Counted from the stretch's first letter, positions 417 to 63,349 are shown. The stretch is 64,000 nt of DNA from Octopus sinensis (GCF_006345805.1 NC_043022.1:5952001-6016000), one strand, 5' to 3'. The notes: a model not told the origin generated them from the letters alone. Program-made: numbers and translations.

Positions 417-597
417 TATTATATATATATATTTTATATTATATATATTTCTATATATATATATTATTTATATATATATATATTTATATCTATATATATA
501 TATTTAATATATATATATATTTTATTATATATACTATATTTATATATATTATATATATATATATATTATATATTATATTATATATTATATATATATT

Positions 598-632
<35 letters not shown>

Positions 633-686
633 ATATATATATTATATACTATATATTATAGTATTTATATATCTATATATATATTT

Positions 687-718
<32 letters not shown>

Positions 719-769
719 GATATATATATAGATTTATATATATATATATATAATATTTTATATCTATAG

Positions 770-821
<52 letters not shown>

Positions 822-870
822 ATATTTATATATATATAATATATATATATTTATATATATATACATCCAT
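195..870. repeat. (CA)n followed by long degenerate (TA)n microsatellite
   Basis: Directly visible; explains the I/Y-rich ORF 11..661. Confidence 0.97.
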
Positions 871-1909
871 AAACACGCTTATGTGGGTGTGTGTGTAACT
901 ACACACTAAATGTTTTACTATATTAATCAAATCCCACATAATCTCTCATCTCTTGCTTTCTGTCACTGCAAGCAGATGTGTCTCTTTCCATCATGATTCA
1001 CTTCCAGTATCTCGTATGTATGTATGTATGTATGTACATAGGTAGATAGGCATCTAGGACCGTAGGAAGGTATATATTTATATATGTGTGTGTGTTGTGT
1101 GCATATGTGAAAATATATATTATGTATAGCTTTGTCAGCATACGTATGTGTGTGTGTGTGTATTGTCTTAAAAGTAACAAGATAAGTCACTTAATAGTTA
1201 CAGAAATTGTATGTTTGCGGATGTGTTGGGCATATAGTAATATATATATAATGTGTGTGTGTGTCTATACATATATATATGCATATATGTCTATACACAC
1301 ATATATATGTTTATATATATGTATATATACATGTGTGTGTGTCTATATGTTTGTGCATAAGTGTGCTATTATGTTTGTGTGTAAGTGTGCTATTGTGTGT
1401 GTGTGTGTGTGTGTCTGTGTGTGTGTGTGTGTGTCCTGAATGTGTTGGTATGTATGAAGAGCATAACGTTTGGATGCTTTATTTCTAATCCATTTAATTT
1501 CCTCCCTTCACCAAAGCCGGGGCCAGGCTCCCCTCAAGGAAGAAATGTTCTTTTAGTCAAATTCAGAAACAGAAACTCTTAACCACAATTTCCACAACAA
1601 TCTATTCTTGTGAATTTGTTAAAAGTTTGACATATTTTTAGTCTTCCTTACAGGATTGCAGTTGGAGAACTGACATAAAATGGGGGTTGGAGGGGGGGGT
1701 CTTTACTTCGAGCCCGAAATTCCTGAATTTTCTGAGTTTTTGTTTTAACATTTAGTGTGTGTGTGTAGTATGTGTGTGCATTCTTTGAATTTCCCAAATA
1801 AGAGAACTCCTGGTGGCTAACTACCAATGTTCTCTCGTAATTTAAACATCAACGGGATAGAATAACATCATCCTGATTTTGGAATTGGCTTACCATTCCA
1901 TTTGGATGT

Positions 1910-2186
1910 TGTCTATGTGTATACATACATACATACATATATATATATAATATATATATATATGATATATATTATATGATATACATCATTACTTATATAT
2001 ATATATCTAATATATATATATATATAATGTACATACATACATATATAGATATGCATACAAATACATAATTTTAATGGAACTATATATATATATATATAAA
2101 CATATATATATTTATGTATATATAAATATATATATATACATGCATACACACTCACAACACACATTCTCTCTTTTCCTCTCTCTCTC

Positions 2187-2220
<34 letters not shown>

Positions 2221-2225
2221 ATAAT
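1910..2225. repeat. Compound (TA)n/(CATA)n/(GT)n microsatellite
   Basis: Directly visible. Confidence 0.9.
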
Positions 2226-2783
2226 GTACGTGCATTTAAGTATGGGGCGAGAGGAATGTTGCAAGAATCACACAGAGAGAATCGTTTGAGCTAAACATAA
2301 TGTCCTGAGTGATTTATTGGCAAAATTTGGTCAGTCGTCCACATTGTAAGAGTGTCTACTGCATTGCATGGGAATTGTCATCTGGTTGTGGCGGACATTT
2401 CCACAGAAGTAGGGGCTGTGCAAAACCTTTGTGCCACATGATTTTACAAGATCAATATGAAAGCCATCTCATGTTGTTTTGTGTTTTGAGAGACGAGCAA
2501 TGAGAGAAACACATGACCATCAGGGAAGGAGGTGATTGGTTGAATACTGATGAGGACTTGCTGAGAAGTTGCTGTAAGAGGGGGCATGACCCTTGGGAAC
2601 AGGAAGGGCAAGTGCAACCCCTAAAATTTTTGGTGGGTGCAAAATTAAAATTTGTATCCCTACTTTTTTCTCATGTTTAGAAAACAGGGAATAAAGAGGG
2701 ATCTGTAAAAAGTAGCTCAGAGTTAGGTTTCTTCTCAAAGAAGATAAAAAAAAAGAAAACAATAAGACCAGGTTTATATAAAA

Positions 2784-3181
2784 CTAGCAGCATATCCCGG
2801 CGTTGCCCGGTATGTAAGAGCCCCTAGTAGGCAACAACTAATCCCAATCTAGTTCTTCCCTCTAGGGAACGAAGGCGCATGTGTAGGTTGCAATGTCTTC
2901 TCTTCACTCGAATACTTCTATGTATACGATGTTCCTAGCTGTCTCCCGACAGAAAATGTGTTGCATATAAAAAGCTTAGATTCTCGACCACATGTCGACT
3001 TTATCAATTTTTTTCAGAACTGGAGGAACTTTTCAAAATTTTCGCTGCGTTAGTTTTGAATTATGACATTGGGCTATGTGTGTGTCAAGTTTCATCAGAA
3101 TCGGTTGAAAGCCGTGGTCAGGGTGAGGGTACAACCTGACAGACACACAGACAGACAAACTGCCGTTTATATAGAGAGAGA
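2784..3181 (-). mobile_element. Non-autonomous Helitron (about 400 bp)
   Basis: Minus strand starts TC (TCTCTCTCTATATAAAC) and ends CTAG (2787-2784). An imperfect CCGG hairpin (2796-2810) lies just inside the 3' end. Inserted between A and T with no TSD; (CAGA)n tract near the 5' end. Confidence 0.8.
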
Positions 3182-3469
3182 TTTTGGGGCAGAATTTGTA
3201 TCCCTAATTCAATTTCGTTCCCGAGACAGTGACAGAGAGTGAGAACTTGGATGTAGGATTATTGTGTTGGGATTGAAACATTGAAATAATAAGGGTGGCT
3301 CGGATCAGGTTCTCATTCCTGAGACAAAAAGATAAACTCATCAAATTAGTTCAGATTTGAAGGTGATATTAACCATCTTTTATGACTGGAATGGCATCGT
3401 TCTTCCTAAACTTGTTTAGTGCGATCAGACGATCAAGAAAGAGGTTTAGTCATAAATCAGGGGTTTTTT

Positions 3470-3501
<32 letters not shown>

Positions 3502-4615
3502 CAGGGCAAAGAGCAAGGCTTGGCATTTAATGGACAAACAAAACCTTGATGCTAAGGCACATTGGTCAGTGGTCAGAGCATCAGGCTCTAACCACTTGTT
3601 CGAAAATATAAGGACACAGATCGTATCGTGTAGCCAGCTGGAGATGACGTCTCCTGGGGCTAAATTACAGCAACATTCGTCCTAAACCAGGACTGCCATG
3701 TTATGTTGGCAAACAATCTTTACTACAATGCGTGATTAGTTCAAAACAATGTGAGTAAATAAGCATTGCTTTTGAAAAAGTAATCTGAATAACTTGACTG
3801 TTATTTTTTTTTTTTGTGCAGATGACGTCACTAGGTAATTTCCATGCAGACATCTTGCTTTTTCACTCTGGCATTCCATTTAGATAGAAAATAGAAAAAT
3901 AACATTTTCATTCCACTGTTAAGTAATTGGTAACCATTATCTATTAATGCTAGAATATAAATTTAAGAAACCCCAGGTAACATTCCACAGCCATATAGAA
4001 AACTGGAGATTTATCAACAACAACAGCAGCAATAAACTGTTCTGGCTCCTCGTCTTCATCAGAGTGTGACTGTGTTTGGGTTAGAAGTGGGGGGAACCCA
4101 TAAAGAATCAACAGACAAAACAGGAATTATAGATTCTTAGAAGACAGTAAAAGAGAGATTCAAAAGCATATTGTAGATTATCAGATTATCTTGACATTTC
4201 TGAAAACGGCAGCGACGGCGGCGGCAGCGGCAGATGTATGAGAGCCGAATGGTATCTGTGGTGGAGAAAATGACACTGGGGAAGTAGATATGTATTAGAG
4301 CCTAACATGGAACAGCTGTTTCATGTGAATTAGATGAGATATTGGCCGATTGTGTGCTGGGGCTTTCCGTGTGCGGGTGGGTGGGTGTGTGTATGGGGGG
4401 TACATTAATGCAGAGCTACATGTAGATATACTCTCACTGTCACACTCACACACACACACGCAGATATAGTACACTTACAGATATATTTATGAGAAGCATT
4501 CCAAGAGCTAACATCAAAATTTACAAGTACACTACAACCGAAATAGATAAACCAACACAAAACAGGGGACAACATGATGTATCCCCCACCACACACACAT
4601 ATATACAATGAAAAC

Positions 4616-33082: not shown

Positions 33083-33465
33083 TCACATTTGGAACTTGAG
33101 AAAAGTCTTGCATATTTTTACTGTTCCGCTCACAGATTGCACTTGTAATGTATGAATCAGCCGGTCAGTTTCTCTTTCTGAAAATCCCAGTTTATCCAGA
33201 TTCTCCTTTAAGCATTTACTAATGCTCCAATTATTATTGGTATAAATATGAATTCATAGTCTGGATATAGAAGCTGGAGGTTTCGAAGCAGTTGTCCATG
33301 GACATCCTCTTTTTCTTTGATTTTCAAAGAGATATCTATATCTGCAGGGTAGCTAACCTCTATGGTGGTCCATACCTTAGCCCTTCTCTCCCAAACAACA
33401 ATATCCGGCCTGTCATGTTTACATCTGGCAGAAGTTTCGATGGAAATATTCCACCAGTATTCTTT
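33083..33465 (-). mobile_element. Restriction-like endonuclease (RLE) C-terminus of an R4/Dong/NeSL-type non-LTR retrotransposon, frameshifted
   Basis: YWWNISIETSARCKHDRPDIVVWERRAKVWTTIEVSYPADIDISLKIKEKED...IPIIIGAL, then after a frameshift KCLKENLDKLGF...VSGTVKICKTFLKFQM*; RPD-IV and IEV..P..EK motifs. Confidence 0.85.
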
Positions 33466-33664
33466 GTATGTACGTACGTATGTATGTATATATACATATG
33501 TATGTATGTATGTATGTGTGTATACATATGTATGTATTGTTGACAGCATAAGAATTTAGAAACTTCAAGAGAGCCAGAAATAATTCTCTTCTGGAATGGG
33601 GAAACTTGAAGTAGATAAAGCTACCATTGTGAAACCTGGATTTTCTATCCCATTGAGTGCATGT

Positions 33665-33753
33665 GTTCTTGTCCGATCACTGAAGTTAAGTAACGTCGAG
33701 CCTAGTGAGTACTTAGATGGGTGCCCGCTTGGGAAACCTAGGTGCTGTAAGCA
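33665..33753 (+). pseudogene. 5S rRNA-derived sequence (about nt 31-119 of 5S)
   Basis: GTTCTTGTCCGATCACTGAAGTTAAGTAACGTCGAGCCTAGTGAGTACTTAGATGGGTGCCCGCTTGGGAAACCTAGGTGCTGTAAGCA aligns by eye to metazoan 5S, including box A and box C; 5' part disrupted. Confidence 0.85.
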
Positions 33754-38375: not shown

Positions 38376-39292
38376 ATCCCCCCCACACACACACACACAG
38401 ATATATGCATGCCTGAATGGCTCACAACAGCATGCTCCAAATACAAACACACACACACACACACTCCTGCAAGTCTGCGTCAAGTTGCTGTGAGGTTGCT
38501 ATTGCCGTTGGCATAACATTGTCTTCGAACGTAACTTGTGTTATTTGCAATGAGAAAGCTATATTAAGACACTCACACGGCCTAAAATTAATTTTCCATT
38601 TTATTTGTATTTCTGTGTGAATTTATTTAATCTGTTATAAATATTGGTTTCTATGGAAACCAATAAAATTCTGACCAATGAAATATGCAAAATAAATGCA
38701 CAACCATTTTTTCTTCCTCTCCTTCTGACCTTTTGTTCTTGGCACCACAAACCATTTTGTTATTTTGTTTCTAATAAGCCAACATAATTAAGATTATCAC
38801 ACTCTAATAATTAGAGGAACTGCTGGATAAAGGAATGGGGTTTTTGGGGTTTTTTTTTGTTTTTTTGTATCACTTGATGAATCATATCTCAACATGGATG
38901 CCTGTCCCAGTTCAGATCTGTGCAAATTCCATTTCATTGTTATTGAATAATTCCTGGAACTGGTAACAGCTCTAAAACAATTGGTGTTCATTTCTGAGAA
39001 AGACATGGTGCCTGTATCTATTGTTTCAGTTTTTAGTGCAGGATATTTGTTACAAGAATGGTTGTTTGTACTTGAGCTGTGGTGCCGGAAGGAGAGAAAG
39101 ACAGAAGGCTGAGAGTGGTGAAAATTGCAGTTTGGATATGAGCTCTGAGAGACTTTAATGGCCTGGTTTTCATTCCTAGTAAACTATCTCACATCAAATA
39201 CCCTTTAAAGTAATGATTTCCAACTGGGGTCCAAATAGCCCTTTAGGAGGTCCACTTAATAAATTGGCTACACTTCCACAGTACAGAATAGG

Positions 39293-44189: not shown

Positions 44190-44680
44190 GGTGGAGGTAG
44201 TGGTGATGGTGGTAGTGGTTGTGGTGGTGGTGGTGGTGGTTGTATGATGGTGGTGGTGTGATGGTAGTGGTGGTGGTGGTTGTATGATGGTGGTGGTGTG
44301 ATGGTAGTGGTGGTGGTGGTGGTTGTATGATGGTGGTGGTGTGATGGTAGTGGTGGTGGCGGTTGTATGATGGTGGTGGTGTGATGGTAGTTGTGGTGGT
44401 TGTATGATGGTGGTGGTGGTGGTGGTTGTATGATGGTGGTGGTGTGATGGTAGTGGTGGTGGTGGTTGTATGATGGTGATGGTGTGGTGGTGGTGGTGGT
44501 TGTATGATGGTGGTGGTGGTTGTATGATGGTAGTGGTGGTGGTATGGTTGTGGTGTTGGTGGTATGATGGTGGTTGTGGTGGTGGTGGTGGTGGTGGTGA
44601 CGCCAGCAACAATGGTGATGATGATGATAGTAGTGGTGTTTTTTATGATGATGATGATGATGATGATAACAATATGGGGG
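44190..44680. repeat. Minisatellite of about 33-39 bp (GGT)nTGTATGATGGTGGTGGTGTGATGGTA in GGT/GAT tract
   Basis: About 7 recurrences of GGTTGTATGATGGTGG. Confidence 0.9.
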
Positions 44681-45516
44681 TAGTGCTGAAAAAAAAAGAC
44701 CCCCCCCCCCCGCCCGCGCTCTGCCCAATGTTTATGTGATGTGAACTTAAACAATGGCCCTGAAGATTGATTATAACAATCTGCTGTGGTATGTCAAAAA
44801 AAAAGCACAAAAACAAAAACAAAACAACAGTAACCAAAAATACAAGCAACAAAAATGCTTCTGGACAATAGAATCCCAACAACAACAACAGCAACAACAA
44901 CAGCAACAACAGAAATAATGGTCTTTGTTCATTTATTTCTTTTTCTTTCCTGTTCCTTAAAGCCTTTATAGTGTTTTTGAACAGGAAATGAGAGGTTGTG
45001 ACATTGATGCCTTTAGTTAAGAGTATATTGAAGCGGGGGGGGGGAGATTAAAAATAGGACGGCGGGGCGGGGGGGGAGTGACTAAAGTACTAAACCCATC
45101 CCCGGTGGCAGGGTGGAGGGTGGGGTGGGGTGGGGCAAGAGTACAGTGGGGGTGGAGGTCGGAGGGTGGAATCAATGAGCTGCACTCTCTTTTTTCTTCC
45201 GCTGATGGCTTCTTTTAAAAGAAAATAAAAGAACTAAAAACACAAAAAAAAAAAATTTAAATAAAAGAACTAAAAAGACAAAAAAAATATTTTAAAATAA
45301 AAGAACTAAAAAGACAAAAAAAAGCAGGAGAAAAAAATCTCAGTAAAACTGATCATTGTTTATTGAACATGTTACATGTTGTAAGGGAGGAGAGAGGGGT
45401 GGTGGAGGCTGGGGTGGGGTGGTGGAGGGTGGTGGTGGTGGTGGCTTATTGATTTTTTCTGTTGGCTGGTCTTACTTAAAAACAACTGTGCTATTGTTTG
45501 GATCGGTCTAACTGGT

Positions 45517-45820
45517 GTTGCCATAGTAACCATTGATAGTGTTCCGGTACTTCCATACACCCTTACCCCACCCTCCTCAGCTGCTTTCACCATAGTAACG
45601 AGGTGGGGTGGGTGATTTAGTGGTCGCACTGTTGTTACTATGGTAACCAGAGCAATTGTGCATCGGCGTCGGGTTATCGTTGCCATAGTAACTCTTGACA
45701 AAGTCTAATAGTTCAGCAGTTGTTACCATAGTAACCAGTGGCAGTATTTAGTGGTCTGTTGTTACCATCGTAACCAGTGCTATTGCCCATTCGCTTCCCC
45801 ACTGTTGTTACCATAGTAAC
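45517..45820. promoter_or_regulatory. Homotypic cluster of 7 RFX X-box palindromes
   Basis: GTTGCCATAGTAAC 45517 and 45679; TTCACCATAGTAAC 45586; GTTACTATGGTAAC 45634; GTTACCATAGTAAC 45722 and 45807; GTTACCATCGTAAC 45761. Confidence 0.7.
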
Positions 45821-46106
45821 CGGGAACAGCCTTTCCTTGTTAAATCTACACTAAATGTAATGAGCCAAGACATTTTTTTCTTTTAATTGAGCCAAATTAC
45901 ATCAGTGGTAATAAATAATTCTTGTTAAGAAAGGCAAGGGAGATAACCCCAGGATTTGAATTAATTAAAAATACAAAGACATGGGGAATAAGTGTAAACT
46001 TTGAAGTAACATGGGGACAACTCCAAATTTATTTCCTAATCTTTACTGATGGCAAAGAAATTCGATTATGTGTGTGTGTGTGTTGTGTGTGTGTGTGTGT
46101 TTCTGT

Positions 46107-62488: not shown

Positions 62489-63349
62489 TTGGTATTTGTC
62501 AATTTTCTTGTCTATCATTTTCTATTGATTTCTGACTTAGACAAAATATTAAAAAATCTGGATAAGAAAGGAAACAAAAGATCAAATCCACTGGCAGTAT
62601 AGAGCTGGTCCTTGTTTTCTTGGGCCCCAGATGGCTGAAAAGTAAAGTCAACCTCTGCAGGATTTTGAATCCATGCTGTGAAGGGCCAAACAAACCGACA
62701 TTATAAGACATTTCACTTTGTACTTGACAATGTCTTTCACAGTTCTAGGGGTAAAGGATGAGACTTTGACTTTAACCTTATATGGTGATGTAGGGCTGAG
62801 AGAGTCACCATGGAAACACAGAGTATTGTAGATGAGGACACATGAGAAAATAGCAGATTTTACCAAAACAAAACTCACTGAATTTAATTACCCAGACACC
62901 ATTCACACGAAAAACGACAGTTAAGTTAGTGCTAACATATTTAATGTAATGAGTGTTTCGTAACTAATTAGATGTAATTATATGGAGAAAATAGGCATTT
63001 TAAGTTCAAAGACAGATATTGTTTTGATAATTTTGGAAGACATGTTCCATTTTAGTAAATATTAGGACTGAGGAGGTACAAAAAGTCTGAAACATACCTG
63101 AAGTTATCTCCCATAATTCATGAAATTATCAAAATAATATTAGTCATTGAGTAAATGTTGTCTTCCTTGACACAGACATTTCTAATTAAGTATTCAATGC
63201 TAATTACACTAATTATATTAACTCCAACTCAACTATTGTAATTATCGTTTGATAAATACTCTGTTACAGCGATATTGTGGTAAATTAATGCATTTGTTGG
63301 AAATAATTATTCTGAAGTAATTCTTAATTATATCAGTTAATTACTCCAT

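Follow-up and report, generated by a model that had tools for sequence, protein, structure and literature searches.

A seven-unit array of RFX X-box motifs in a repeat-rich stretch of the Octopus sinensis genome

Results

An array of X-box palindromes among unrelated tandem repeats

We analysed one stretch of 64,000 nucleotides of Octopus sinensis DNA, called the window hereafter. At 45517-45820, it carries five exact matches to the X-box consensus GTNRCC-NN-RGYAAC and two copies with one mismatch (consensus GTNRCCNNRGYAAC; Table 1). The exact matches start at 45517, 45634 (minus strand), 45679, 45722 and 45807, and the one-mismatch sites are TTCACCATAGTAAC at 45586 and GTTACCATCGTAAC at 45761. 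Dinucleotide-preserving shuffles yielded 0.18 ± 0.41 exact matches per 64-kb window, and none of them reached five. The seven RFX X-box palindromes announced in the preliminary description are therefore present at far above the expected density, two of them being degenerate in one half, as it had stated (the left half at 45586, the right half at 45761). The flanks that it had quoted, CTGTT..CAG and ATTTAGTGGTC, are also found in the array, where they are common to the units.

The neighbourhood of the array is a run of unrelated tandem repeats, delineated with Tandem Repeats Finder (TRF; Table 1), which also reported a (CAA)n tract nearby. GGT-rich tracts like the one at 45396-45444 recur elsewhere, and the remainder of the window is mostly made of short repeated (SINE-like) elements and microsatellites. 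By contrast with this repetitive setting, neither blastn nor a near-match search found a second or partial copy of the array in the 64 kb. Its GC content is 0.474 versus 0.383 for the window (92nd percentile). The earlier statement that the array lies in unique, GC-richer DNA thus holds within the window, with a moderate rise in GC. Since the observed/expected CpG ratio is 0.59, the array is not a CpG island.

No gene was recognised close to the array. In the interval from ~40 to 50.5 kb, no ORF of at least 50 aa contains a Pfam domain and no plausible exon was seen by eye, in a scan that a non-coding first exon or a short exon could escape. Pfam scans of ORFs of the same minimal length elsewhere in the window found nothing either. 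Since the ORFs near the array are devoid of Pfam domains, there is no sign of a promoter-proximal position, which would place the array at most ~500 bp upstream of a ciliary or otherwise RFX-dependent gene. The search for the nearest gene, by ORF list and Pfam, ended with none within ~5 kb. With neither a recognisable gene or domain at that distance nor a CpG island, the promoter reading put forward in the preliminary description finds no support.

Other features of the window were recorded in passing. The minisatellite at 44231-44599 is free of stop codons over 165-202 aa in all three minus-strand frames, which encode His/Thr/Pro runs; these frames are low-complexity artefacts, not genes. A full-length Rfam match to 5S rRNA lies at 33639-33753 (+) (52.8 bits versus a gathering score of 38, E = 3.5e-8) and adjoins a piece of the common SINE-like repeat of the window. 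This match may represent a 5S gene, a pseudogene or a SINE that derives from 5S rRNA. An ORF at 33208-33549 (-) shows 59% identity to the uncharacterised Octopus bimaculoides protein XP_014788340.1. It has four protein-database matches in all, two of them from short ENA contigs (66-73% identity), and no Pfam domain, and is probably repeat-derived. Its relatedness to the O. bimaculoides protein is the one direct sign of octopod ancestry in the window.

Table 1 Features of the X-box array and of its surroundings (positions in the window; scores from the C. elegans matrix applied to octopus DNA)
Feature	Position	Strand	Description
40-nt GGT-rich minisatellite	44231-44599		9.2 copies, 83% identity; TRF
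A-rich 36-nt tandem repeat	45222-45323	.	2.8 copies; TRF, repeat family D1
GGT-rich microsatellite	45396-45444	.	72 nt left of the array; TRF; possible repeat-element tail
X-box 1	45517-45530	.	GTTGCCATAGTAAC; older unit, outside the blocks; exact; 19.8 bits, window rank 1; identical to bbs-7
Block A	45577-45692	+	Units 2-4 with spacers; paralogous to block B
X-box 2	45586-45599	.	TTCACCATAGTAAC; block A unit 1; left half degenerate; 10.0 bits, rank 17
X-box 3	45634-45647	.	GTTACTATGGTAAC; block A unit 2; transitions C6T and A9G; 17.0 bits
X-box 4	45679-45692	.	GTTGCCATAGTAAC; block A unit 3; exact; 19.8 bits
Block B	45713-45820	+	Units 5-7; tandem duplicate of block A
X-box 5	45722-45735	.	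GTTACCATAGTAAC; block B unit 1; exact; identical to osm-6; 17.0 bits
X-box 6	45761-45774	.	GTTACCATCGTAAC; block B unit 2; right half degenerate, one mismatch; 12.8 bits, rank 9
X-box 7	45807-45820	.	GTTACCATAGTAAC; block B unit 3; exact; 17.0 bits
(TG)n	46069-46100		TRF

Two of the octopus 14-mers are identical to validated X-boxes of C. elegans

The X-box is a 13-15-nt imperfect inverted repeat of the form GTNRCC-N(1-3)-RGYAAC, to which RFX proteins bind through their winged-helix DNA-binding domain, and the sites of the array are of this form. Moreover, two of the octopus sequences are identical, letter for letter, to validated X-boxes of C. elegans: GTTACCATAGTAAC is the DAF-19-dependent site of osm-6 and GTTGCCATAGTAAC that of bbs-7 (PMC3245922). 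The motif is a true X-box, as the preliminary description had named it. The weakest copy, X-box 2, departs from GTTACCATAGTAAC at two positions and from the IUPAC consensus at one.

The scan with a position weight matrix proposed in the preliminary description was run with a log-odds matrix derived from 28 validated C. elegans X-boxes (PMC3245922 Table 1), the two 14-mers identical to octopus sites being excluded. The seven sites score from 10.0 to 19.8 bits (Table 1), as compared to a median of 19.0 bits and a 10th percentile of 15.9 bits for the C. elegans training set. Seven positions of the 64-kb window reach at least 15.9 bits, five of which are inside the 304-nt array. The other two are isolated (62804-62817, GTCACCATGGAAAC, 19.7 bits; 38647-38660, GTTTCTATGGAAAC, 17.8 bits), and the lone site at 38647 is the sole further near-match to the core within the window. 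Homotypic clusters are recognised by at least three sites for one factor in a few hundred bp, significantly above background; with its seven sites in 304 bp, the array is such a cluster.

The array grew by duplication and its cores outlasted its spacers

All seven copies share one direct register of a ~24-nt unit (ctgttGTTACCATAGTAACcagtg, repeat family D2). The conserved unit exceeds the X-box and reads approximately CTGNT-core-CAG, with 3-5 additional nucleotides on each side in most units. The preliminary description had presented the 45634 site as the reverse complement of the site at 45722 and 45807. The letters do agree, the 45634 core being 100% complementary to that at 45722; however, this arises because the core is near-palindromic, and the flanks show that 45634 is a direct, not an inverted, copy that carries two transitions.

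Blocks A and B align with each other with a local score of 64, versus 15 ± 2 for shuffles, and blastn aligns them at 70% identity over 117 columns (E = 4.5e-8). The spacers measure 25-55 nt, so that the unit lengths are irregular (39-69 nt). Only the spacer pairs 2/5 and 3/6 are alike, the remaining pairs being at the level of shuffled sequences, whereas the mean pairwise identity of the cores is ~87%. Because the spacers outside the A/B pairing are unalike while the cores are ~87% identical and the blocks are paralogous, the history of the array, as reconstructed from its copies, is an early multiplication of the ~24-nt unit, then a duplication of a three-unit block. Since block A was duplicated as block B, the seven sites trace back to about four independent units. 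The array was consequently overcounted when it was first called an unusually strong RFX element.

The nested inverted repeats at 45512-45652 were also noted. There, unit 1 and its flank pair with unit 3 over 19 nt, enclosing a C-rich tract (45559-45573) that is complementary to a G-rich tract (45601-45613). This layout is probably a by-product of the palindromic repeats.

Between blocks A and B, 37 of the 42 core positions are identical (88%), as compared to 47 of the 65 spacer positions (72%) plus 10 gap columns (one-sided Fisher P = 0.04 without gaps, 0.002 with gaps). Together with the shuffle-like older spacers, this bears out the idea of a local duplication followed by spacer drift while the motif persisted. 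On the independent C. elegans matrix, the seven core substitutions cost 5.4 bits in total, versus 26.7 ± 7.8 bits for random ones; they are mostly changes that the X-box matrix tolerates. With a uniform model, the corresponding P value is 0.006; a transition bias of 2:1 raises it to 0.04, and a stronger bias to 0.07-0.15. If both A-to-G changes at position 4 are treated as a single event, it becomes 0.12, and with the full 30-site matrix, 0.05. These values point to a constraint on the cores that is real but modest, and dependent on the mutation model. The constraint may have operated here or, at an earlier stage, in a mobile progenitor.

A minisatellite that decays neutrally and uniformly would not leave cores that are ~87% identical beside spacers at shuffle level. 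Minisatellite units are alike along their whole length, which is not the case here, and TRF reported no array at 45517-45820 even at a score of 30.

Coding, RNA and transposon signatures

A dead exon encoding a Gly/Tyr/Asn repeat was considered because every unit reads G-Y-Y-G-N-N on the minus strand and four of the six spacings are divisible by three (binomial P ~0.10). More precisely, the minus-strand units all read (G/S/R)-Y-(Y/H/D)-(G/S)-(N/E)-x in one register. This coding repeat was rejected: the register is broken by two frameshifts and four stops, and the peptide has no protein relatives. The six frames contain 4-9 stops per 111 codons, for 5-6 expected by chance. Codon positions 1, 2 and 3 carry 7, 2 and 3 substitutions, respectively, with no bias towards the third position, and 10 of the 12 are non-synonymous. 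Among 5.8 billion proteins, none is related to the stitched repeat peptide at E <= 10, and no protein relative was found for a 109-aa ORF spanning units 1-4 either. A 50-aa ORF was compared with 1.84 billion representatives in an exhaustive phmmer search. Its three matches, to one translated tandem repeat and to two giant repeat proteins of bacteria, all have E-values that are inflated by repeats. The array is non-coding.

A structured RNA was rejected as well, as no Rfam family reaches its gathering score and nothing relevant appears at E <= 1. The region of the array folds with z-scores of -2.7 and -3.2 relative to shuffles, because the repeats are self-complementary.

Hallmarks of a mobile element (terminal inverted repeats, target-site duplication, tail, adjacent reverse transcriptase or transposase) were sought around the array. 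No inverted repeats span it and no remnant of either enzyme was found within ~5 kb, the GGT microsatellite being the sole tail-like feature. An AT-rich 22-nt pair at 44931/46027 (D7) was examined as a target-site duplication; having 82% identity and no adjoining tail, it was judged to be due to chance.

X-box arrays recur in unrelated eukaryote-derived contigs

Public metagenome contigs were scanned for two X-boxes 20-50 nt apart, and at least 120 contigs matched. The scan used the X-box core as query with no control motif, and the frequency of such arrays is therefore not relative to that of other palindromes. The search for double X-boxes in a collection of viral contigs gave none.

About 105 of the contigs listed carry one high-copy MITE-like element of 300-400 nt, and come from one host, in one set of related samples (Ga0209737, Ga0209628, Ga0209629, JGI20163 and JGI20166; for example L039:1-250 and L019:1400-1700). 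The element combines terminal inverted repeats (TTGAAGATGTAGAATACATCTAT) with a TGACGTCA palindrome and with 2-4 tandem monomers of 44 nt, each of which contains an X-box (GTTKCCATAGTAAC) and GCCATCTTG, a YY1-like core.

A second mobile carrier is a LINE. Contig L060 includes, within 494-4498, an intact ORF2 (1093 aa) in which Pfam recognised endonuclease and reverse-transcriptase domains. Its 3'UTR contains eight X-boxes with variable spacers (3819-4270), which start 47 nt past the ORF2 stop codon; the array ends in a 30-nt tandem that is followed by a (CCAGTA)n tail. Apart from the motif, no similarity was found between L060 and the octopus window.

X-box cores are also found in regular satellites (L049, 23-nt unit; L054, 32-nt unit), and L086 has four X-boxes with an even spacing of ~59 nt. 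Irregular arrays that closely resemble the octopus one, their spacers being variable, are present in L004, L058, L060, L011, L087, L096 and L116, among which L058 also resembles by eye a satellite with a ~22-nt unit. Some of these arrays are close to the coding sequences of ordinary genes. That of L004 (640-1205), with 12 sites in 560 nt, is upstream of a DEG/ENaC channel exon, and that of L116 (667-766) is beside a clathrin heavy-chain exon. Those of L096 (500-615) and L047 (1112-1197) are positioned just past the stop codons of a cofilin ORF and of a Tudor-domain ORF, respectively. The arrays of L058 (2079-2340) and L112 come from the same assembly, JAAUYG01.

In the arrays of other organisms, the half-sites vary independently, as those of X-boxes do (GTTTCC, GTTGTC, GTGTCC), and not in the compensatory manner of a hairpin. 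On the other hand, L023 (948-1020) and the L047 array consist of 18-nt units that read GYYGNS or GYHGNY on the other strand, each with an X-box-like 14-mer. Coding-like repeats can therefore mimic X-boxes, the L047 array nevertheless following a stop codon. Overall, X-box arrays recur in unrelated eukaryote-derived contigs, including a LINE 3'UTR and a MITE-like family.

Discussion

Cilia, together with many genes of sensory neurons and of spermatogenesis, are under the control of RFX factors, which are conserved master regulators whose sites are known as single promoter elements. The X-box and its RFX ligands, homotypic site clusters and transposon-borne binding sites are all textbook matters. 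What is unusual here is an array of seven X-box units outside a recognisable promoter, and the recurrence of such arrays across unrelated eukaryote contigs. No description of X-box arrays, or of RFX sites in tandem repeats or transposons, was found in the literature searched, apart from the work on C. elegans genes with several X-boxes (PMC3245922); on RFX in cephalopods, the one relevant paper reports an octopus rfx3 gene (PMC6984359).

The octopus sites have the same 14-nt imperfect palindrome, GTNRCC-NN-RGYAAC, as the canonical RFX/DAF-19 X-boxes of osm-6 and bbs-7. Validated C. elegans X-boxes however occur singly, or sometimes in pairs, at 60-300 bp upstream of the start codon (PMC3245922), whereas the octopus array has seven in tandem and no recognisable gene within ~5 kb. 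Several X-boxes are found in C. elegans F25B4.2, in the yeast RNR genes, which are controlled via Crt1, and in exon 1 of human MAP1A (PMC3245922). As in these genes, strong and weak sites are combined in the octopus (17-20 versus 10-13 bits). In those genes, however, the promoter or the first exon contains two or three sites, which do not form a seven-unit array built by duplication.

Outside the RFX family, the 5'UTR insulator of gypsy, which is carried by a mobile element, contains 12 Su(Hw) sites in ~350 bp. The Bicoid sites of hunchback also form a homotypic cluster (Bicoid is cited in PMC3245922). The octopus array shares with both of them degenerate copies over a few hundred bp and variable, unrelated spacers; the factor differs, and the octopus array may be an enhancer, an insulator or a sink. 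Binding-site monomers also make up the 5' promoter of mouse L1, a transposable element. In such element-borne arrays, as in the octopus, tandem units each have a factor site, which is an X-box in the LINE and MITE-like cases described above. Unlike them, the octopus array shows no element body, no terminal repeats and no other copies in the window. Finally, head-to-tail direct repeats, a higher-order block duplication and a region rich in tandem repeats are shared with minisatellites, from which the array differs by its irregular units, by the conservation of the core only and by the silence of TRF.

In view of these comparisons, the array would most likely act at the DNA level and serve several RFX-family dimers as a docking platform. 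The density of the motif, its identity with osm-6 and bbs-7 sites, the matrix scores, the retention of the cores, the non-coding nature of the array, its uniqueness in the window and the independent variation of half-sites in the arrays of other organisms all argue for this reading, and an rfx3 gene is present in octopus (PMC6984359). We give a probability of about 0.35 to a host element, namely a distal enhancer that responds to RFX or a local sink for it, as opposed to the proximal promoter of a ciliary gene. The absence of a recognisable gene within ~5 kb and of a CpG island, the dense tandem repeats, the modest constraint, the small number of independent units (about four) and the conservation past the X-box all speak against a host element.

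Such a host element could operate as follows. Tandem duplication placed X-boxes side by side, the cores being kept while the spacers decayed. In a tissue where the array is accessible, several RFX dimers are predicted to dock on adjacent sites. Multi-site occupancy may then give high, cooperative or buffered RFX recruitment, and the recruited RFX would affect a gene located beyond the inspected ~5 kb.

A host function need not be assumed, however, because X-box arrays elsewhere are carried by mobile elements. The array may be cargo of a mobile or dispersed repeat that decays here without any role for the host; it could, for instance, be what is left of the 3'UTR in a LINE truncated at its 5' end, or represent internal monomers of a non-autonomous element. 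In that case, the X-boxes would have been kept by selection on the element, perhaps through the recruitment of RFX in the germline or in ciliated cells, and the conservation of the A/B cores could predate the insertion, having arisen in the lineage of a master copy. That X-box arrays are cargo of a LINE 3'UTR, with eight sites and a (CCAGTA)n tail, and of a MITE-like family present in ~105 of the listed contigs makes a high-copy dispersed repeat more plausible than before. The GGT-rich microsatellite 72 nt away, the other tandem repeats around and the lack of a nearby gene are also consistent with cargo. Yet 64 kb of repeat-rich DNA contain no second or partial copy, and the array is bounded neither by terminal inverted repeats nor by a convincing target-site duplication. 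Nor is there a remnant of a reverse transcriptase or transposase within ~5 kb, or any similarity of the window to the L060 element. In addition, the younger and more regular units lie away from the microsatellite, which is the opposite of the L060 layout. We hold an origin as cargo to be nearly as probable as a host element.

If instead the array were a neutrally decaying minisatellite, nothing would be bound and a look-elsewhere coincidence would account for the resemblance to X-boxes. The array does consist of direct repeats, with an evident duplication of a block, and is set among other mini- and microsatellites, and satellites with X-box-like cores do exist (the 23-nt, 32-nt and, by eye, ~22-nt units mentioned above). 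The constraint also weakens under a strong transition bias (P = 0.07-0.15). Nevertheless, the contrast between the cores and the shuffle-level spacers of 25-55 nt, the failure of TRF to detect a repeat and the bias of core substitutions towards changes that X-boxes tolerate make a neutral minisatellite improbable.

The ~24-nt unit could also be read by a palindrome-binding protein other than RFX, one that recognises CTGNT and CAG as well, or act in a transcript through hairpins or helices between units. CTGNT..CAG flanks are not needed by RFX, and conservation runs 3-5 nt past the X-box on both sides in most units. The region also folds better than shuffles do (z = -2.7 and -3.2); however, such a signal is typical of any self-complementary repeats and there is no Rfam match. 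The core variation is not compensatory, the consensus itself having a C:A mismatch at positions 6/9, and half-sites in the other arrays vary independently. Furthermore, the flanks differ between the arrays of different organisms while the X-box core is shared, with the caveat that the core was the query of the search. A reader other than RFX is accordingly quite improbable.

Lastly, it is very improbable that the X-boxes reflect, at the DNA level, a dead exon that encoded a Gly/Tyr/Asn-rich peptide repeat: the common minus-strand register, the spacings and the 18-nt GYYGNS or GYHGNY units of L023 and L047 speak for such a relic, against which stand the frameshifts, a number of stops at chance level, the mainly non-synonymous substitutions and protein searches that gave only irrelevant, repeat-inflated matches.

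The LINE 3'UTR and MITE-like arrays suggest that mobile elements can carry and scatter RFX sites. A broader proposal, which we regard as unlikely, is that tandem X-box arrays form a recurrent, undescribed class of elements in animal genomes, spread at least in part by LINE 3'UTRs and MITE-like elements that exploit RFX, the octopus array being one instance. If this were true, X-box arrays would seed new RFX-responsive enhancers or sinks, and would thereby rewire ciliary, sensory or germline programmes. If the octopus array is only a decaying repeat, the finding is ordinary. As an array whose cores were kept while its spacers decayed, it would be a natural experiment in the origin and persistence of homotypic clusters. 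It would also be a candidate RFX-dependent enhancer in a cephalopod, a group in which cis-regulation has been little explored.
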